From the NCBI GenBank assembly GCA_025594325.1, contig JANHCV010000017.1, positions 62,001 to 126,000 of the forward strand: 64,000 nt of DNA, read 5' to 3'. The stretch's first letter is position 1. Every line of letters begins with the position of its first letter. The notes beneath the pieces are model-generated. The model did not search any database, was not told where the DNA came from, and worked only from the letters and a program-made list of their open reading frames with translations. This DNA comes from Blastocladiella emersonii ATCC 22665. Lineage: Eukaryota > Fungi > Blastocladiomycota. The translations under genes were made by a program, and so were the position numbers. This document shows, piece after piece, positions 45,969 to 61,976 of the stretch.

Positions 45969-48900
45969 ATGTATCATCCGCAACCACGACCGCGCACTGG
46001 CACCGCGCGTCCGCGCACCAGCGCGTCGACGCGCCCCACAACGGCCACGGCTGGCCGTACCGGCCGCTCCGTCGCGCCGTCCACGGCAGGAGGAGGAGGT
46101 GGCAGCGCTGCTGCTGCGCCGTCCGCCCGCCACGTCGTCGCCCTCTTCCACCCGCGCCCGAGCAACCTCCAGGGCGCCGCGTCGAACCTTGCATCGGCTC
46201 GAGGAGGCCGCGTCACGTCGTCAGCGGCGGACACGCGGGCCTCGGGGGAGGTTGGACTGTGTGTCTTCGACCTCACGTCGTCCACCTGTGCGCTCTCGCA
46301 GTTCGCGGACTCGCGCTGCCTCGTGCGCACGCTGGGGAAGCTTGGCGTGTTCCCGCCAGCCGAGCTCGTCGTGCCGTCGTCCTTCTACCATCCCGTCAAG
46401 TCCGAGGCCGCGATCCTGCTCGAGGGCAACCTTGACGCGGCCACGCAGGTCATCCCCGTTGCTCGCAAGCACTTTGATCCGAGCGCTGGCATGGAGCTCT
46501 TCACCCAGCTCGCCCTCGCCGACTCGCTGCCGTCGCTTCGGGACCAGGTGGTCGCGTGCCCGCACGCTCTGAGCTCGCTCGCGGCGCTCCTCAAGTGCGT
46601 TTCCTGCTCCAACTGACGCTGGCTCATCGACGGCACTGACACGCCCGCGGTCCCTGCAGGTTCATCGAGGTCAACCACGGTCTGTCCTTTGCTCGCACGT
46701 CGATCCACTTTGTCGTCGACCCCGTTGGCGGGACTCTCTTGATCGACGGACCCACCTCGAGTGCCCTCGAGCTCGTCGCCAACCAGGCCGGCCAGCGCGG
46801 ACACACGTTGTTCGCGGTCATGAACCGGTGCTGCACGGTACGCGCTCTCCGCCAGCAGACAAAGCGAACGTTGCTGACTGACTTGACCCTCGATGCAGGT
46901 CATGGGCATGCGCTTACTGCGCTCGACGATTCTCCAGCCTCCGAACGACCCGAGCACCATCAACTCGCGCCACGACGCCGTAGATGGTACGTCTCGGCCG
47001 ACCGCAGCGCGTGTGCGAGCCGAGACTGACGCACTCGACGTGGGCACCCTAGCGCTCCTCCTCGACCTGGCTACGACCAAGGCCATCCAGGACACGCTTA
47101 AACGAGTTCCTGTCATGGATCGAATCATTTCTGGGGTACGATTCTACGCCATCCTTGCGCGACACGTGTGACTAGTTGAAGGCTGACTGACCTCTGGCAC
47201 GTACTTCAGCTCGTCCAAATCCCCAAGAACACTTCGTCCAAGTCGGCGGAGCGCGAGATCGGCCTCATCATCGACCTTCGCCACACCCTGCGTGCGATCC
47301 CTCCGCTCCTCGACATCCTGTCCGCCATCTGTGGTCAACGCGACGTCCACGACCAACATGCTGGCCTCAACGCTTCGTCGCCGCACCCAGCACTTCTCGA
47401 GCAGGTGCGCACGTTGCTCATGGAGGGCGCCTTTTCGGCCATGGACTCGGCCATCTCCAGGGTCTTTGAGGAGGACCTCGAGGTTGAGTCGACGCCCATC
47501 GGGATCCGCAATCAGCGCGCATTCGCTATCCGGAGCGGCGTCCACGGTCTCCTCGACGTTTCTCGCCGCGCTTACCAGGAGTCGGTCGCTGACATTCACC
47601 AGCTCATCAACGACTATGCTGGTACGCCCGTCGCCTCGACCAACCCTGCACCAGTTCTAACGGATCCGCTGCCCCCTCGTGTGTAGAGGAGTACCAGCTC
47701 GCGCTCAAGGCGCAGTTCACCGCGGCGCTCGGGTTCAGCATTGAGTTCAACCTTGATTCGAGTGGGCTCCCTCGGTCAACAGCCCCGACCGAGGACGCCG
47801 ACTCGATCTCGGGCACGCCTGCCCCGCGCACGCCAGTGGTTGCCGACCTCCCGCCCATCTTCATCAACGTGGTCCGCCGTCGCGGGACCGTGCGGTGCAC
47901 GACGCTCGAGCTCATGAAGCACAACGAGCGGATCTCGGAGTCCATGGGCGACATCTACCTCATCTCGGACCAGTACGTGTAGCGCTGGGGGCTCGTTTTT
48001 ACTGCAGGCCGACTGACAATCGAGTTTCGTGTGGGTAGGATCATCAAGGGCCTCATGGAGGAGCTCCGTCTCCGCGTCGGCGCCCTGTACCGACTGTCCG
48101 AGGCGCTCGCACTGCTCGACATGCTGACGAGTTTTGCCGTTTTCCGGGCATCAAGCGATCTCGGTACGTTCCACTCGCACACGCGCCTGCAGCGTTGGGC
48201 TGGCACTGACGTCGCCTCTAATCTAGTGCGACCCTCATTTGGCGACGCTGTCGACATTCGGCAGGGTCGGCATCCGATTCAGGAGGTACTGCTCGAGCTC
48301 GGCCAGGTCGCGCTTGGCGCCGGCCGGGCGGCCTTTGTCCCAAACGACACCCACCTCAACCTTTGTCCTTCAGTCGTTAACGAGGGCGGCGGCACCTCGG
48401 CGGTCGGCCAGTCGCACATCCAGGTCATCACGGGCCCCAACATGGCGGGCAAGACCACGTACGTGAAGCAGGTCGCGCTCATTGCCATCCTCGCGCACAT
48501 CGGCAGCGGCGTGCCGGCTGTCTCGGCCACGGTCCCGCTTCTCGACCGGATCCTATCGCGCATGGCATTTGGCGACTCGATCCTCACGCACTCTTCGACA
48601 TTTGCTGTCGAGATGCGCGACACGGCTCGCATCATCGAGGAGGTCCTCGTCCCTGGCCAGCGGGCGCCAACTGCTGCCCGTGCGCGGTCCGTCGCGTCGA
48701 GTGTCGCTGAGACACAGGCGTTCTCGCCGTGCCCTGGCGGTCCTCTTTTGCCGCGCGACCCGCCGCTCCCGAGGGCAGCCGACCGGTACACGCTTGTGCT
48801 GATTGACGAGCTCGGGCGCGGTACGTCGCCCAACGAAGGAGCCGGGTTGGCTTACAGCGCGGCCGAGGCGCTGACGCTCTTCGGGACCAACGTGCGTGTG

Positions 48901-49586
48901 TCTCGCTCGATCCAGGCCTTCTAGAGCAGCTGGCTGACACGTCGATCCCCGTGTAGGCGATCGTCCTGTTTGTCACGCATTTTTTCGAGGTGCCGACAAT
49001 GCTTCTCCGCGCGTATCCCGGGCTGGTGACGCACTCGCACCTTGGCATGTCGCAGCGCGACGACCAACTGGCCTTTGACCGCGGCCTCATCAGCCAGGCA
49101 CCCGGTGACCGCGGTCCCGCCCTGGGCGCGACCGATGAGGGCGGCGCTGGAGCGGGGTATGGGATTGAGCTGGCCCAGGTCCTGCCGTTTCCCAAGTCGG
49201 TCATGGACGCGGCCACGTTCGCGGCCAAGCTGCTCGAGCCGAAGCCGCTCGGCGACTCTGACGTGGCTCCGCTCGGGACCGATGCCGGTCAGCGGTCCGC
49301 CTCGCCGACCAATACGCGCGCATCAGCGCTTCTTGGCCTCGCGCGCGACGCCATTGCCCTCGGCTCCAGCCCGGACCTCGCGACGGTGCGGACGGGCCTC
49401 GAGCAGCTCGCCGTTGCCGCCCGCGACGCGCTGTTCCCGGATCGCGCAGGCACGCCGCCGCCGCCGCCGTCTAAGTCGACTGGTACGGCGCGGGCGAGCT
49501 CGCCCGCAACGTCCGTCACGTCGGTCCGCGCGAGCCCGCGGAAGCGGCGTCGTGTTGTCGCTGGGGATCTGGCAGCTTTGGATTGA
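45969..49586 (+). CDS. MSH4: Meiotic MutS homolog 4
   Basis: N-terminal RPRTGTARPRT, EVGLC, LIDGPTSSALELV, NQRAFAIRSGVHGLLDVSR, ITGPNMAGKTTY, SSTFAVEM and LVLIDELGRGTS; no mismatch-recognition domain I is evident. Confidence 0.85.
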
Positions 49587-52120: not shown

Positions 52121-53167
52121 ATGGGCCTTATTGTAAACCTTCTCTGCCCTTGCTCCCATGGTCTGAGCCACTGGCTGCCCGCAGCGTACCTGCCTCATCC
52201 GCGGTATGCCGTTGACTTGGAGCACCCCGACGCCGAAACGCTCGCCGAGATTGTCGTCCGCGGCCTGCTCTCATGCTATCCAGTCACGCTGGTCGTCGGG
52301 GTTCTTGTTATGCGGCTTCTGGTCCGCGTATACCTCGGCGCTGCAGAGACGCACCACGTCGATGCGCAGGCCTCGGAATCGCCGCGGCCACCGCAAGCTG
52401 CGAATTCTGCAGTGGTTCCCGCTGCGCCTGTCGCTCAGTCGGTACCTCCTGCACCTCCTGCCCCAGCGCTCCTTGTGTGCACCAAGTGCCACGATTCGCG
52501 CAAGGTCATGCCAGCAACAGCCGGCGCCGGGGAACCCCGCAAACGGTCCGGGCAACTTCTCTACGAGGCGTTAGCTGCCGATCCGACTCTTTCGGCAATG
52601 GAGGAAAGTGGGGCGCTCCAGGTCGTCCCCGTCAAGTGCCTCGCCAACTGCGACGGCGCAAACTGCATCGCGCTCAGCGCCCGCGACAAGTTTTGCTACC
52701 AGTTCGTTGGGCTGACAAACGATACCGCTGATATCGAAGATATTATCACCTTCGCGTCGCGCTACGCTGCACCGGCGGACGATTCGGTCGAGGGCCGCTC
52801 GTGTTTCTCAAAGGTCAAGACCCGCCCCAATCGGCTGCGCAGCAACTGCGTCGCACGGATTCCACCACTCGAAGGCGACGCCCGCGATATGCTCACCGGG
52901 ATGGGTCCAATGCTACCGCCAGCGCAAGAAATCCCTGAGCCCGTCCAGCTCAAAGTCCCGCCACCGTCAATTTCCTTCGCGGAGGACGCAATCTCGGCCC
53001 CAATCTGCAATACTCTCTCCTCGGAAGCAGCGAACTCGGCCATCTCGCTTTCCCCGAATATGGGGCTCGCCGTCGCAAAAGTAGACTCGCACGATGATGG
53101 GTTCCAGGTCGTTGTGTCGCGGTCTGTCCGACGCAAGCTGCGACGGATGCGGAACGTTTTGCCGTAG
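52121..53167 (+). CDS. DUF1636-like Cys-rich putative metal-binding protein with an N-terminal TM segment, intronless
   Basis: LLVCTKC..SGQLLYEAL..VVPVKCLANC..CIALSARDKFCYQFVGL..FASRYAA..RPNRLRSNCVARIPP matches my recollection of the bacterial DUF1636 consensus. Confidence 0.72.
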   Translation: MGLIVNLLCPCSHGLSHWLPAAYLPHPRYAVDLEHPDAETLAEIVVRGLLSCYPVTLVVGVLVMRLLVRVYLGAAETHHVDAQASESPRPPQAANSAVVPAAPVAQSVPPAPPAPALLVCTKCHDSRKVMPATAGAGEPRKRSGQLLYEALAADPTLSAMEESGALQVVPVKCLANCDGANCIALSARDKFCYQFVGLTNDTADIEDIITFASRYAAPADDSVEGRSCFSKVKTRPNRLRSNCVARIPPLEGDARDMLTGMGPMLPPAQEIPEPVQLKVPPPSISFAEDAISAPICNTLSSEAANSAISLSPNMGLAVAKVDSHDDGFQVVVSRSVRRKLRRMRNVLP

Positions 53168-53629
53168 TCATGTTATATCCACGCAACACGATCTTTATTT
53201 GAGCCATACTGTGAGTAAAATTTAGCGCCATGGGCCCGGAACGGGGTTTGCGCAACTAAAAGGTCGCGTGGTCGACGCTCTACCCTATGTGCCCTCAAAG
53301 AAAAGCTGCTCGATGCCCGCACGTGAAGCCAATCTCGTGTCAGGCAAGCAGAATTTTCGCGATGTTCATAATGCGTGACCCACGTGACAATCACACTTCC
53401 GTGGGAGACGCGTCGCTGTCTCTCTCTCGCGCCGCGTCTTTCGCCCGCTGGAACACTCGCAGCTCGCACGGGCATCGGGCCACCAAAATCTCGATCGCAG
53501 CTCTCGCTCGCTCGCTCTCTCCCCACGCAGTCATACCGCAACTGCTCTACGAACCAACCCCCCTCGCGCGCGTCAAGACTCCCGATCGTGCACGCCACTG
53601 CAGCAACGACCCACCCCTCGTGCCCTGCC

Positions 53630-54751
53630 ATGTCCGGCGTACCATTCCAGAAGCTCGGAGACTTCGAAGCCGGCATCTCGGTCGACGACTCGCGCCAGAC
53701 GGGGGCGATCCGGCCCGGCTCGGCCTCGGGCGGCGCCCGCGGCATCGGCGGCAACTTCTCGGGCCTCGGCGGCGCCAACCTGCGCAACCTCGAGAACCGC
53801 CTCAACATGGCCAACTCGAACCTGCTCGACAAGTTCAGCTGGATGGACGACAAGCGCAAAGTGGTGCGTACCGCCTGCTCGGGTGTCCTCGCGGAACGCC
53901 AGACACTCACACATGACGGCGTGTAGCTACTTCGTGCTGTCCTCGGCGAGGGTCTGTGCACCTTCCTGTTCCTGTTCATCGTGTGCGCGACGCACGTCAA
54001 CCACATCCGGTCGCACACGCCCGACTCGCTGGTCCTGGGCGCCATCTCGACGGGCTTCGCGTCGATCGCGCTCATCTACTCGTTCGCCGACGTGTCGGGC
54101 GCGCACTTCAACCCGGCCGTGACGTTTGCGACCATGGTGACGGGCAAGACGTCGCCAGCCAAGGGCGCCATGTACATTGGGATCCAGCTGTTTGCCGCCA
54201 TGTTCGCGACCGTGTTCGTGCGCGCCGTGTACCCCAAGGACCCGTCGGGCGCGTCGACCATGGAGCTCCTGTTTGTCGACGTGGGCAGCGACTCGGACCC
54301 GGGCCGCGCCTTCGTCATGGAGTTTATCCTCACGTTCATTCTGGTCTACGTCATCTTCGCGACGGCCTTCGACACGGTCGACACGGCGCCGGTGCAGGTG
54401 GCCGCGACGCACTTTGACGAGGACGGGCAGCCCGTCGAGAACCCGGCCGCGGCGCGCGACGCCAACGTCGGCCGCAACCTGACCATCTACACGACCAGCG
54501 GCAACACCAAGGCCGGGTTCGCCCCGCTGGCCATCGGCATGACGCTCGGGTTCCTCTGCTTCCTCGGTGGGTCCGTGTCGGGCGGCGCCTTCAACCCGGC
54601 GCGCGTGTTCGGGCCGGCGCTCGTCGGCAACTACTGGAACAACCACTGGGTCTACTGGCTCGGGGACTTCCTGGGCGCGGCCGCGGCGGGCTACACGCAG
54701 TCCTTCTTTGCCCACCGCCCCGTGCAGAAGAGTGCGGGCGGGGGCCAGTGA
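53630..54751 (+). CDS. Aquaporin (MIP family)
   Basis: LRAVLGEGLCTFLF after intron 53864-53926; two NPA boxes (SGAHFNPAVT and GGAFNPARVFG); HWVYWLG. Confidence 0.95.
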
Positions 54752-54871: not shown

Positions 54872-56318
54872 TCACTCACGGGTCGCGCCTGTTGTTGTCG
54901 GCGCCAAAGTTAAAGTAGCTCTCGCGGAACCCCTTGTGGCCGGGTTTCTTGGTCGACGCGACGGTAGTCGCCGGGTCGCTCGAGTTGGCAGAGGAGAAGG
55001 CATCGAGAGCGGCGGAGCCCATGGACTCGAGCTTAGCGCCGAGGAGGCCCGAACCAGAGACGTGCATGCCGGGCTCCCAGTCGCGCACCTTTTCGATGGT
55101 GATGAGGCGGCGCGACCACTGGCCAAAGGGCTGCTCCGAGTTGGCGACGAGGCGCAGGGCCGGGTGCAGGGGCACGTCCTCGGGGGCGTACTCGGCCTTG
55201 ACCGTCGGGAGCCAGTAGGACAGGCGGCCGCCGACGACGAGCGAGCGGGCGGCAAAGTCGGTGAGGTCAGCCATGACGGCGTCGAGGTCGTAGGGAACCG
55301 TGGCGGGGAAGCGGCCCTGGCCGTGGCTCGGCGCGTGCTTGCGGGACGCGTCGGGCGAGACGCCGGCGGGGCGCCACTTTTCGCCGCCAATCTTCTTCGC
55401 ACCGGCGCGAACGCCGTAGGGCGGGTCCGTGACGATGGCGTCGAGGAAGGGGCGGGCGTTGCGCCACGGGTGGTGGGCGAGGTCGAAGACGAGGCAGTCG
55501 AGGACGCGGTCGGCGCACCCGTACTGGGCAATGTTGGAGTGGACCGAGACGGAGCCGGGCGCGTCCGTGGAGCGGGCGCTGCCCTTGCCCGTGCCGCGAA
55601 TCTGGCGGCCGTCAATGTCGCTGCCGACGGTGACGCCGCCAAAGTGGGCGGCGGTGACGAGGAAGGAGCCGGTGCCGACAAAGGGGTCGTAGACGAGGGC
55701 GCCGGGCTTGACGTGTGCCATGTTGGCCATGATGAGCGAGAGCTCGGGGTCCATGGAGGTGGTGCCGAGGTAGGCGCGGCGCTTGAGGTTGTAGCGGTCA
55801 ATGGCGCGGCGGTCGCCCGTGGCGACGAGGAGGCCGAAGTAGACGCGGGTCATGCGGTGGTCCGGGTCGTGCGGCGGGGTCCACGCCTCGAGCACGCCAA
55901 GGGTCGCGTCGGGTGTCTTGAGGTCAATCACCCCGCGAAAGGCCATGTAGGCGAACGAGTTGATGATGGCGACCTTTTCGGGCATGGACTTGGTGGTGTT
56001 GAAGGTCTCGACGACAAACTTGAACGAGGCGTCCATGAAGGGGGCGTTGCGGTTGCCCGGGTTGGCGCGCACGGCGGCGTGCAGCGCATCGTAGTCGTCG
56101 GCCGCGTCCCACAGGGCGTAGGCGTGTTTGACGAGGATGCTGCGGCGCACGAGAGCGGCGGCGGCGGCGTCCGAGGCGAGGTCGACGGTGGCAAAGGGGC
56201 ACGCGGGGTCGTAGTCGACCCACGTCAGGGCGACGCCCTCGAGGGCGGCGAGGGCGTCGATCTCGGGGCGGCGGAAGTCTTCATGTGCCTGGGCAAAGTG
56301 CAGCAGATACGGCGGCAT
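54872..56318 (-). CDS. TRM11: tRNA m2G10 methyltransferase, intronless
   Basis: YLLHFAQAHEDFRRPE, RAYLGTTSMDPELSLIMANMA, VYDPFVGTGS and DAIVTDPPYGVRAG. Confidence 0.95.
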
Positions 56319-56591
56319 GGCGGATTGAGTGGGTGGAATGAGTGGAAGGTCGGCGGGTGCGGCGTGGCGCAGCCGACGAGGTCGCCGCGGCGGCAATGTG
56401 CGCGGCGGGTCATGCGGCGTCACGTTGGCGGGCGGCAGGCACTCAACATCGGCGCGGCGGAGGTCGCTGCGCCGCCGCGATCGCGCCGCACGCTGGCCGG
56501 TCGCCGCGGCCGCGACGGCGCTGAGACACTGCTCGACGACGACGACGACGCCGGCGTGCCGCTCCCTGCAACCGCACCCACCACGCATACC

Positions 56592-57372
56592 ATGTCGCTC
56601 CTCCGCCCCGCCATGGGCCTGCGCGCCGCCGGCGCCGCCGCCCTGCGCCGCCCCGCCCCTGCCACCGCTGCCATGTGCGTGTGCCGTGTGACGTGGATCC
56701 GCTGCTGCCGCTGCCGCCACGGTGAGCGCAGCGCGGTTATGAATCAACGAATGAATGAACCAACGCCCTCCCGCACCCGCGCCCGCTCCGCGTAGCCAGC
56801 AGCTCCGCGCCCAGTCGACGACCACGGACGTGTCCGCGGCGCCGCCCGCGCCGCTCCCCGCGGCAGGCCCCGCGCGCGGCCAGATGGCGGCGCTCGCCCA
56901 GGGCAAGGGCGACTACGTGCTCGCCACGGTCGACTCGGTCATCAACTGGATCCGCGAGGGCTCGCTGTGGCCCATGACCTTCGGTCTCGCGTGCTGTGCC
57001 GTCGAGATGATGCACATGGCCGCCGCTCGCTACGATCAGGACCGCATCGGCATCGTGTTCCGCGCCTCGCCGCGCCAGTCGGACGTGATGATCGTCGCCG
57101 GCACCCTGACCAACAAGATGGCCCCCGCCCTGCGCAAGGTCTACGACCAGATGCCCGAGCCGCGCTGGGTCATCTCCATGGGCTCCTGCGCCAACGGCGG
57201 CGGCTACTACCACTACTCGTACTCGGTCGTGCGCGGCTGCGACCGCATCGTCCCCGTCGACATCTACGTCCCCGGCTGCCCGCCCACCGCCGAGGCCCTC
57301 ATGTACGGCGTGCTGCAGCTGCAGAAGAAGATTGCCCGCGAGAAGACCACCCGCATCTGGTTCCGCAAGTAA
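56592..57372 (+). CDS. NDUFS7: NADH:ubiquinone oxidoreductase PSST subunit
   Basis: Mitochondrial presequence exon, then [29 protein letters not shown] and [12 protein letters not shown]. Confidence 0.97.
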
Positions 57373-59726: not shown

Positions 59727-61976
59727 TTACTGGAAGAGCAGCTCCGTGTACTTGGGCAGGGGCCAGAACTTGTCGGCCACCTTCTGCTCGAGCGCGTCCG
59801 CGGCGGAGCGCACCTCCTCCATGGCGGCGACGAGCTTGGCGTCGGCGGCCTTGGCCTGCTCGACGGGGTCGGCAATGTCGAAGATGGCGTCGGCCGTCTC
59901 GGTGAGGGCAGCCGACGAGGCCGTGAGCTTGACGAGCAGGGGCGTGATGGCCTTGATGGCGTCCACCTCGGGCGACGCGTCGCAGCCCGCGGCCTTGAGG
60001 GCCGTGGCCGTGTCGGCGAGCGACTTGCGGTAATCGTACACGGCGGGCAGGATGGTCTGGTTGATCATGAACTTGAGCGTGTTGGCCTCGATGAGCAGGT
60101 CCTTGGCGAAGCGCTCGACGAGCACGTGGTAGCGCGAGTGCAGCTCCTCGTGCGTGAACACGGCCGTGGCCTTGGTCAGCATGTCGGCGTTGACGGGCTC
60201 GAGCAGCTGGGCGTAGGCCTCGGGGACCGACTTGATGTTGAGCAGGCCGCGCTTCTCGGCCTCGTCCGACCAGGCCTGCGAGTAGTTGTCGCCCTCGAAG
60301 CGGATGGCGCGCGTGTCGGCAATCAGGTCGCGGATAACGGCAATCTTGTCGTCCTCGGTGGCAATGGCCTTGCCGGCCATCTTGGCCTCGAGCTTCTTGG
60401 CAATCTGGTCGAGGGCCGAGGCGACGGCGGCGGTGAGGACCGTGACGGGGAACGAGGGCGACTGCTTGGAGCCCACGGCGCGGAACTCGAACTTGTTGCC
60501 CGTGAAGGCAAAGGGCGAGGTGCGGTTGCGGTCCGTGAGGTCGCGGGCAATCTCGGGGAGCACGGCCACCTTGAGGTCGAGGACGGTGCCGCCGAGCTTG
60601 ATGGTCTGCATGTGCGGGACCGAGAAGTTCTTGATGCCGCGCTTCTGCTCAATGGCGTCGAGCACCTCGGTGAGCTGCTCGCCGAGGAAGGCCGAGATGA
60701 TGCCGGGCGGTGCCTCCTGGGCGCCGAGGCGGTGCAGGTTGGACGAGGACGAGATGGAGGCGCGCAGGATGCCCTGGTGCTGCTTGACGCCGAGCAGGGT
60801 GGCGAGGAGGAAGATGAGGAAGCGGTAGTTGGTCTCGGGGCGGACCGTGGGGTCGAGCAGGTTGTCGCCCTGGTCCGTGGACATGGACCAGTTGCAGTGC
60901 TTGCCCGAGCCGTTGATGCCCTTGAAGGGCTTCTCGTGGAAGAGCACCTTGAGCTTGTGGCGGTGGGCGACCTGGTGCATCACGTCCATGACGAGCAGGT
61001 TGTGGTCGACGGCGACCGTGGCCTCCTCGAAGATGGGGGCGAGCTCGAACTGCTGCGGGGCCACCTCGTTGTGGCGGGTCTTGACGGGGACGCCGAGCTT
61101 GAGCAGCTCGAGCTCCGACTCGGACATGGTGGCGAGGACGCGCGAGGGGATCTTGCCAAAGTAGTGGTCCTCGAGCTGCTGGTGCTTGGGCGGGACCGAG
61201 CCGATGAGGGTGCGGCCCGTGAGCTTGAGGTCGGGGCGCAGCGAGTAGAGGTTGCGGTCAATGAGGAAGTACTCCTGCTCGGTGCCGAGCGTGGTGTAGA
61301 CGCGCGACACGTTCTCGCCGAGCAGGCGCAGGACCTTGACGGCCGACTTGGAGAGGGCCTCGTTGGCGCGGAGCAGGACCGTCTTCTCGTCGAGGGCCTG
61401 TCCGTTGTAGGAGATGAAGACCGAGGGGATGTAGAGGGTGGTGGTGCCCTTGATGGGCCCGTCGCGCAGGAACATGGGCGAGGTCGTGTCCCAGACCGTG
61501 TAGCCGCGGGCCTCGAAGGTGGTGCGCATGCCGCCCGAGGGGAACGAGGACGCGTCGGGCTCCGACTGCAGCAGCTGCGAGCCCGAGAAGGCGTCGATGG
61601 CGGCGGCAAACTCGCCGCTGGCGTTGTACTTGAGGGTGAGGAACGAGTCGTGCTTCTCGGCCGTGGTGCCCGTCTGCGGCTGGAACCAGTGGGTGAAGTG
61701 GGTGCAGCCGCGGTCCTGGGCCCAGACGCGCACCGCGTGCGCGACCGCGTCGGCCGTGGTCTTGTCGAGCGTCTGGCGGCCGCGCATCTGCTTGACGAAC
61801 TGCGCGTAGACGGGCTTGGGCAGCGCCTTCTGCAGCGCCGACAGGCCGAAGACCGAGGTGCCGAAGATCTCGGACGGGGTCAGGACGCGGCCGTGCACGT
61901 CCGTCGGCACCTTGACGTCGCGCGGCGTGTGGGCGACGACGCCGAGGACAGCCTCGATGCGGGCCTGCTGCGACAT
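59727..61976 (-). CDS. glnN: Glutamine synthetase type III (GlnN), intronless
   Basis: 749 aa with GSIII motifs THFTHWFQP..TAEKHDSF, EPDASSFPSGG.R.TFEARGYT.WD, GTEQEYF, HNEVAP.QFE, HEKPF.GINGSGKH and DRNRTSPFAFTGNKFEFR. Confidence 0.95.
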   Translation of the reverse strand: MSQQARIEAVLGVVAHTPRDVKVPTDVHGRVLTPSEIFGTSVFGLSALQKALPKPVYAQFVKQMRGRQTLDKTTADAVAHAVRVWAQDRGCTHFTHWFQPQTGTTAEKHDSFLTLKYNASGEFAAAIDAFSGSQLLQSEPDASSFPSGGMRTTFEARGYTVWDTTSPMFLRDGPIKGTTTLYIPSVFISYNGQALDEKTVLLRANEALSKSAVKVLRLLGENVSRVYTTLGTEQEYFLIDRNLYSLRPDLKLTGRTLIGSVPPKHQQLEDHYFGKIPSRVLATMSESELELLKLGVPVKTRHNEVAPQQFELAPIFEEATVAVDHNLLVMDVMHQVAHRHKLKVLFHEKPFKGINGSGKHCNWSMSTDQGDNLLDPTVRPETNYRFLIFLLATLLGVKQHQGILRASISSSSNLHRLGAQEAPPGIISAFLGEQLTEVLDAIEQKRGIKNFSVPHMQTIKLGGTVLDLKVAVLPEIARDLTDRNRTSPFAFTGNKFEFRAVGSKQSPSFPVTVLTAAVASALDQIAKKLEAKMAGKAIATEDDKIAVIRDLIADTRAIRFEGDNYSQAWSDEAEKRGLLNIKSVPEAYAQLLEPVNADMLTKATAVFTHEELHSRYHVLVERFAKDLLIEANTLKFMINQTILPAVYDYRKSLADTATALKAAGCDASPEVDAIKAITPLLVKLTASSAALTETADAIFDIADPVEQAKAADAKLVAAMEEVRSAADALEQKVADKFWPLPKYTELLFQ

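Follow-up and report, generated by a model that had tools for sequence, protein, structure and literature searches.

A conserved, apparently membrane-anchored eukaryotic branch of the ferredoxin-like DUF1636 family, seen from a gene of Blastocladiella emersonii

An intronless DUF1636 gene and its surroundings

The stretch of DNA analysed here (the window; 64,000 nucleotides of contig JANHCV010000017.1 of B. emersonii ATCC 22665) has a GC content of 62–73% and carries a complete DUF1636 gene on its forward strand. This gene was taken from the list of open reading frames, and its neighbors were identified with Pfam:

48031-48924, + strand: exon encoding MutS domain V (MSH4-like)
52121-53167, + strand: complete intronless DUF1636 gene, 348 codons from ATG to TAG
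53981-54751, + strand: MIP-family aquaporin
54876-56906, - strand: Trm11-like RMKL/UPF0020 methyltransferase
59727-61976, - strand: type III glutamine synthetase (GSIII_N, E = 1.8e-66)

A first-pass annotation of this DNA, made from the letters and their open reading frames, had described an intronless open reading frame, and this was borne out, the frame being intact. An orthologue in Catenaria anguillulae aligns colinearly with it, from the N-terminus ('MGLIVNLLCPC' vs 'MGIVVDLLCPC') through to a C-terminal DDGF..RR motif, which supports both the start codon and the absence of introns. On its 315-kb scaffold the Catenaria gene, itself without introns, is flanked by an ASH2L-like gene and an SMC gene. 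On the other strand of the B. emersonii window, a 300-aa open reading frame beginning with ATG (53173-54075, -) runs antisense to the region upstream of the aquaporin gene and overlaps that gene; this frame probably arises from the high GC content and does not represent a gene.

The same annotation had noticed more A/T-ending codons here than in housekeeping genes, and the counts agree. GC at third codon positions (GC3) is 0.68 for the DUF1636 gene, lower than in any other gene of the window, against 0.78–0.98 in the 16 neighboring reading frames whose GC3 exceeds their own GC1 and GC2 (among the Pfam-matched neighbors, aquaporin 0.95, glutamine synthetase 0.98, Trm11-like 0.87 and MSH4 0.78). 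The Catenaria orthologue has a GC3 of 0.66, as compared with 0.69–0.71 in the genes beside it, and because it resembles its own neighbors in this way the depression of GC3 is peculiar to the copy in this genome. The low value would be read most simply as weak codon bias of a gene with low expression, which fits better than foreign origin.

Ferredoxin-like domain, anchor and tail of the protein

The predicted protein was divided into the following parts, all on the + strand:

52121-52180: residues 1–20, conserved hydrophobic, Cys-containing N-terminal motif MGLIVNLLCPCSH.., common to Catenaria, Sorochytrium and Paraphysoderma
52265-52339: residues 49–73, membrane anchor, predicted N-out/C-in (Kyte-Doolittle 19-residue mean 2.07)
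52340-52456: residues 74–112, Pro/Ala-rich disordered linker (AF2 disorder at 74–115, pLDDT 49–62, without secondary structure)
52457-52870: residues 113–250, DUF1636 / thioredoxin-like ferredoxin domain (Pfam, AF2, Foldseek, profile against the PDB)
52478-52489: first Cys pair, C120-x-x-C123 (CTKC), invariant in 111 homologues, codons read directly
52637-52651: second Cys pair, C173-x-x-x-C177 (CLANC), invariant in 111 homologues, aligning with CLSAC of 9jn8
52871-53164: residues 251–348, C-terminal extension, mostly disordered (AF2 pLDDT 39–46 at residues 290–330)
53093-53104: residues 325–328, DDGF motif in the tail (DDGF..RR common to Catenaria only)
53120-53152: residues 334–344, basic helix ending the tail (AF2)

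The assignment to DUF1636 made in the first pass was confirmed by Pfam, in which residues 117–249 matched the whole PF07845 model (1–117 of 117) with a score of 67.6 bits, where Pfam's gathering threshold is 31.6 (E = 1.7e-18). This was the sole Pfam match at E up to 1, a range that held no match to PF01257 or to the CDGSH, Aim32/Apd1 or DGAT3 families, and an NCBIfam search of the protein gave none. DUF1636 has been described as a family of small soluble single-domain prokaryotic proteins of about 130 aa (PMC4520260), and the first-pass annotation had likewise called it prokaryotic; being small, soluble and single-domain is a descriptive trait of the family and not its definition.

Across 111 full-length domains, eukaryotic and bacterial, the only invariant columns were C120, C123, C173 and C177, which were also invariant in a second alignment (A7), and in the RP...ARIPP motif R235, P236, R246, P248 and P249 were invariant or nearly so. 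The core originally proposed, CxxC..CxxxC..C ending in ARIPP, therefore stands as to four cysteines and the ARIPP ending; its fifth cysteine, C182, varies across the 111 homologues.

AF2 modeled the domain from the 111-row alignment with a pLDDT of 90.1 and a pTM of 0.84. Foldseek comparison of this predicted model with solved structures in the PDB gave 9jn8 as best match (TM by target 0.83–0.88, E = 6e-10, probability 1.00, identity 30–32%), an entry released in 2025 as 'Crystal structure of a thioredoxin-like ferredoxin of Rhodobacter capsulatus' (molecule ORF378). Next came Aquifex aeolicus Fd4 (1f37, 1m2a) and Azotobacter vinelandii FeSI (5abr), with probabilities of 0.99–1.00, TM by target of 0.56–0.62 and E of 1e-3 to 1e-2, followed by NuoE/NDUFV2. 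When PDB sequences were searched, the family profile matched 9jn8 at E = 7e-31 and gave weak matches to 1f37 and the NuoE chains (E = 0.008–0.04), and the B. emersonii protein by itself matched 9jn8 at 1.5e-9 with both Cys pairs and ARIPP aligned. The thioredoxin-like ferredoxin fold, which the first pass had named for this family and which was predicted for DUF1636 in 2015 (PMC4520260), is thus what the model gives here. From the title of the 9jn8 entry and the conservation of the ligands we infer that the four cysteines bind a [2Fe-2S] cluster; they could bind Zn or Co instead. Literature searches returned no relevant paper for ORF378/9JN8 and no paper for PF07845.

The remaining parts of the proposed architecture, an added N-terminal transmembrane segment, a Pro/Ala linker and a C-terminal extension, were all recovered. 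The hydrophobic segment at residues 49–73 falls within a single AF2 helix spanning residues 38–73 (pLDDT 77–92). In the full-length AF2 model (mean pLDDT 74) the confident compact domain covers residues 116–258, and the linker and most of the tail (residues 260–333) are disordered. Linker length is highly variable among homologues and reaches about 350 aa in Kickxellomycotina. The N-terminal motif takes the form M-G-(I/L)-x-x-x-(L/F)-(L/I)-C-P in blastoclads and a shorter form, M-x-I-(L/F)-W-P, in Kickxellomycotina; a helix start of G-(W/C)-x-P-L recurs in fungal members. N-myristoylation of Gly2 was considered and dropped because the motif varies in orthologues.

In layout the protein is like mitoNEET/CISD1 and CISD2, in which a single-pass anchor near the N-terminus leaves a short N-terminal end on the lumenal or intermembrane side and a small [2Fe-2S] domain in the cytosol. 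This is analogy and not homology, since the fold and ligands of the CISD proteins are unrelated (a CDGSH site of three Cys and one His) and the B. emersonii protein lacks a CDGSH Pfam match. With R. capsulatus ORF378 and other bacterial DUF1636 proteins it shares the Pfam family, the CxxC...CxxxC cysteines, the RP...ARIPP ending and the fold. Those proteins are soluble and single-domain, of about 115–145 aa, and often encoded at the head of a cobW-cobN operon under riboswitch control; in contrast, the B. emersonii protein has 348 aa with anchor, linker and tail, is eukaryotic, lacks B12 neighbors and falls in a separate clade. Fd4, Azotobacter FeSI and NuoE/NDUFV2 have the same overall fold and their CxxxC pair aligns, but the CxxC partner replaces Cys22 of Fd4 as the second ligand position (PMC4520260). 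PF01257, the NuoE/NDUFV2 family, is unmatched at E up to 1, and the protein is not part of complex I. Eukaryotic thioredoxin-like ferredoxin proteins with a [2Fe-2S] cluster are known in yeast Aim32/Apd1 and plant DGAT3 (PMC8482512, PMC6250708); these belong to other Pfam families, unmatched here, and differ in architecture. Aim32/Apd1 occur in Dikarya, whereas no named holder of a eukaryote-type DUF1636 protein is a Dikaryon.

The weak codon bias might suggest a gene that is decaying or silent, or bacterial DNA that contaminates the assembly. This we regard as highly improbable, as the reading frame is unbroken over 348 codons, every residue invariant in the family is present, and conservation with Catenaria runs end to end, the N-terminal and DDGF motifs included. 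The gene is flanked by MSH4, aquaporin, Trm11-like and GSIII genes in the same 64-kb stretch of 67% GC, and contamination was rejected because these flanking genes are eukaryotic.

Distribution, phylogeny and origin of the eukaryote-type branch

Word-index searches found few members of the family: the whole reading frame returned Catenaria only, the domain two proteins, and an alignment query 13 matches. It therefore took an exhaustive profile search to see the family, which over 1.84 billion representatives brought up 567 relatives with E of 1e-3 or less. Among the 150 best of these, about 70 were eukaryote-type (166–595 aa, matching the whole profile), and the bacterial-type members were shorter (115–145 aa) with lower profile scores. 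A search of the ESM Atlas by features and shape, covering clusters of 50 or more members, returned bacterial DUF1636 clusters only. The closest relative was the 399-aa Catenaria anguillulae protein (P0001; 46% identity, 199 bits), against 72 bits for the best bacterial BLASTP match.

Thirty of the roughly 70 eukaryote-type clusters were looked up and 13 carried an organism name, being those of 12 non-Dikarya fungi and the bacterium Thalassospira marina; no Dikaryon, animal or plant was among these 13, and no member of Mucoromycota was among the named matches. Besides B. emersonii, the holders in Blastocladiomycota were Catenaria, Sorochytrium and Paraphysoderma. The others were Quaeritorhiza (Chytridiomycota), Smittium, Spiromyces, Dimargaris and Coemansia (Kickxellomycotina), Piptocephalis (Zoopagomycotina), and Entomophthora and Basidiobolus, with Entomophthoromycotina represented. 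We found no mention of eukaryotic members in literature that mentions DUF1636.

Four further members lie on contigs with plainly eukaryotic neighbors. One (locus L001) has genes for actin, a MARK-type kinase, SAC3 and RNase PH as neighbors; another (L005) is on a 1.85-Mb metagenomic contig with PABP and SRP72, of which the 16.6 kb that were fetched have 75% GC; a third (L007) is accompanied by genes for ribosomal protein L1, NSRP1 and an aspartate aminotransferase, the latter closest to Atlas clusters that are 98–100% eukaryotic; and the fourth (L009) neighbors kinase and WD40 genes.

Some features of individual loci and groups were recorded alongside. Loci L001 (8001-9681) and L003 (24-1312), from eukaryotes of 38–39% GC, hold anchor-plus-DUF1636 genes of 173 and 181 aa, and at both an actin gene lies just downstream on the opposite strand, a conserved micro-synteny. 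At L005 (8001-8639) the protein is an anchor-free DUF1636 member of the P0152/P0070 group from an intron-poor eukaryote, with two NUDIX genes also nearby. Five proteins of Kickxello- and Zoopagomycotina (P0006, P0007, P0013, P0015 and P0029) have at least one extra Cys pair in the loop that follows the CxxC, C-x(4-8)-C-R-L, followed by an acidic D-(I/M)-E-D motif, and low-complexity linkers of 150–350 aa; the blastoclad proteins are without the extra Cys and the acidic motif. The extra cysteines might form a second metal site.

A tree of 111 rows and 128 columns was constructed in IQ-TREE (LG+C20 PMSF). It is unrooted, its bacterial rows are only the 45 representatives closest to the eukaryotic profile, and the bootstrap had not fully settled, so that support values are rough. 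All 45 bacterial-type rows lay beyond a single branch (99/95). The blastoclad proteins (window, Catenaria, Sorochytrium and Paraphysoderma) formed one clade (98/75), within which those of the window and Catenaria paired at 100/98, and this grouping of the four blastoclads fits the prediction of vertical descent. All named fungi fell in one clade of 45 tips (88/91) that includes some further groups, and two more eukaryotic clades, of 5 and 16 tips, stood outside it (each 100/97–98). Domain identity between the eukaryotic and bacterial sides was 25–37%.

A strongly hydrophobic segment precedes the domain in 42 of the 74 eukaryote-type sequences and is found in all three eukaryotic clades. The other 32 have no detectable anchor; several of them are fragments or truncated models, and the group P0053–P0062 with P0070 seems to be truly soluble. 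Lys and Arg were counted in the 15 residues after and the 15 before the segment, and the C-terminal flank was the richer in 38 of the 42 anchored members, the N-terminal flank in none, with four ties. The flanks of the B. emersonii protein are mildly asymmetric, with one Arg N-terminally and two C-terminally when the anchor is taken as residues 49–65. Under the positive-inside rule, the ferredoxin-like domain is predicted to face the cytosol, with the N-terminus outside or lumenal. The cytosol is where an Fe-S domain is expected to be matured. The predicted anchor is ancestral and not an add-on of this lineage.

The first-pass annotation had proposed that the domain was acquired horizontally and then refitted with a transmembrane segment in this lineage, that is, that this fungus or its recent ancestors received a DUF1636 gene from bacteria, to which helix, linker and tail were then added. 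Such an event is attractive in that the family is described as prokaryotic (PMC4520260) and the gene is intronless with the lowest GC3 in the window, but the results above speak against it. The anchored layout is common to at least five non-Dikarya fungal groups and to further eukaryotes, the blastoclads form one clade (98/75) with the bacterial type past the 99/95 branch, the best bacterial match scores 72 bits against 199 for Catenaria, and in Catenaria the orthologue is like the genes around it in GC3. Judged by the tree, transfer into this fungus or its near ancestors is excluded, and we consider recent transfer very improbable and largely refuted already. A broad vertical distribution in eukaryotes had been named at the outset as what would speak against the proposal, and it is the distribution found. 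Low GC3 and the absence of introns are no evidence of transfer here, and the tempting reading of an 'alien gene' is corrected.

On the ultimate origin of the eukaryotic branch the tree is silent, and we draw no inference from it because it is unrooted and its bacterial sampling is limited to the profile-closest sequences. A single very old bacterial transfer, or inheritance from an endosymbiont, may have founded the eukaryote-type branch, with later loss in Dikarya, animals and plants. One branch splits the bacterial from the eukaryotic sequences, the two sides share only 25–37% identity over the domain, the named holders are patchy and confined to non-Dikarya fungi, and the family is far more populous in bacteria. 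Set against this are the lack of a root, the 45 profile-closest bacterial representatives and a tree that indicates no donor lineage, and the three deep eukaryotic clades would equally fit presence in an early eukaryote. We give the old transfer slightly less than an even chance; it concerns origin and not function, and is compatible with the reading of vertical inheritance and membrane-tethered redox function preferred below.

B12 context, with proposed metal binding and function

The first-pass annotation had placed DUF1636 genes near cobalamin loci in prokaryotes, and an example was found in a metagenomic bacterial locus (L012, 8671-10385). Here about 120 nt separate a cobalamin riboswitch (RF00174, 101.5 bits) from the DUF1636 gene downstream of it, and the genes after that are cobW, cobN, a CobG-like gene, cbiC and those for the methyltransferases, with cobU and cobA/cobO divergent upstream. 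This is a clean example of DUF1636 heading an aerobic B12 operon, and the same arrangement has been reported for Phaeobacter inhibens (preprint 10.64898/2025.12.19.695462). Two other bacterial loci, L011 (Thalassospira) and L013, carried no B12 genes, so that on a bacterial context of three loci, one of them with a cobalamin operon, and one preprint, the link between bacterial DUF1636 and B12 is real and not universal.

The annotation was also right that early-diverging fungi use cobalamin. B12-dependent enzymes have been reported in all non-Dikarya lineages and in no Dikarya, with the full complement in Blastocladiomycota (PMC8085122). The fungal groups that yielded a DUF1636 protein here are all non-Dikarya, and the fungal distribution of DUF1636 thus resembles that of B12 use, a pattern of loss in Dikarya that many ancestral genes share. 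None of the six eukaryotic loci inspected had a B12-related neighbor, and a review of cobalt made no mention of a DUF1636 protein. The anchored proteins might supply a redox step so far missing from the cobalamin handling of fungi and protists that scavenge B12, and descend from the bacterial ferredoxin encoded first in cobW-cobN operons under riboswitch control. If so, they could for example act at the surface of an organelle and donate the electrons that reduce cob(II)alamin, for adenosylation or for the remodelling of corrinoids, the supply of electrons for cobalt reduction being our guess at one possible specific role. We treat a role in B12 as a lead of low probability.

Instead of an Fe-S electron carrier, the protein might be a metallochaperone or a sensor of metals, with Co or Zn held by the four cysteines and a membrane tether that places it beside a metal or B12 transporter. 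Databases label members of the family 'metal-binding protein', the bacterial gene can sit directly before cobW (a Co(II) chaperone) and cobN, and the preprint cited above (10.64898/2025.12.19.695462) calls DUF1636 'potentially involved in cobalt insertion'. However, the closest relative with a solved structure entered the PDB as a ferredoxin, the domain agrees with the [2Fe-2S] ferredoxin Fd4 in fold and at three of the four positions of the ligands (PMC4520260), and no B12 or metal gene adjoins any of the six eukaryotic loci inspected. On balance we think this function unlikely.

The reading we prefer, with a probability of roughly 0.6, is that of a vertically inherited eukaryote-type DUF1636 protein serving as a membrane-tethered one-electron carrier or redox module. 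The N-terminal signal-anchor helix would fix the protein in an internal membrane with its short N-terminus on the lumenal or outer side, and the flexible Pro/Ala linker would hold the thioredoxin-like ferredoxin domain in the cytosol. There C120, C123, C173 and C177 would bind a [2Fe-2S] cluster, by analogy with the solved bacterial relative, and the protein would pass single electrons to or from a partner or act as its redox module.

In the literature DUF1636 is known as a small prokaryotic protein, often at the head of B12 biosynthesis operons. What is new here is a coherent eukaryotic branch with an added membrane anchor, conserved across non-Dikarya fungi and several protist lineages. This branch of a known ferredoxin-like family seems to have been previously undescribed, and its anchored members offer a specific candidate, open to testing, for an Fe-S redox protein tethered to a membrane.
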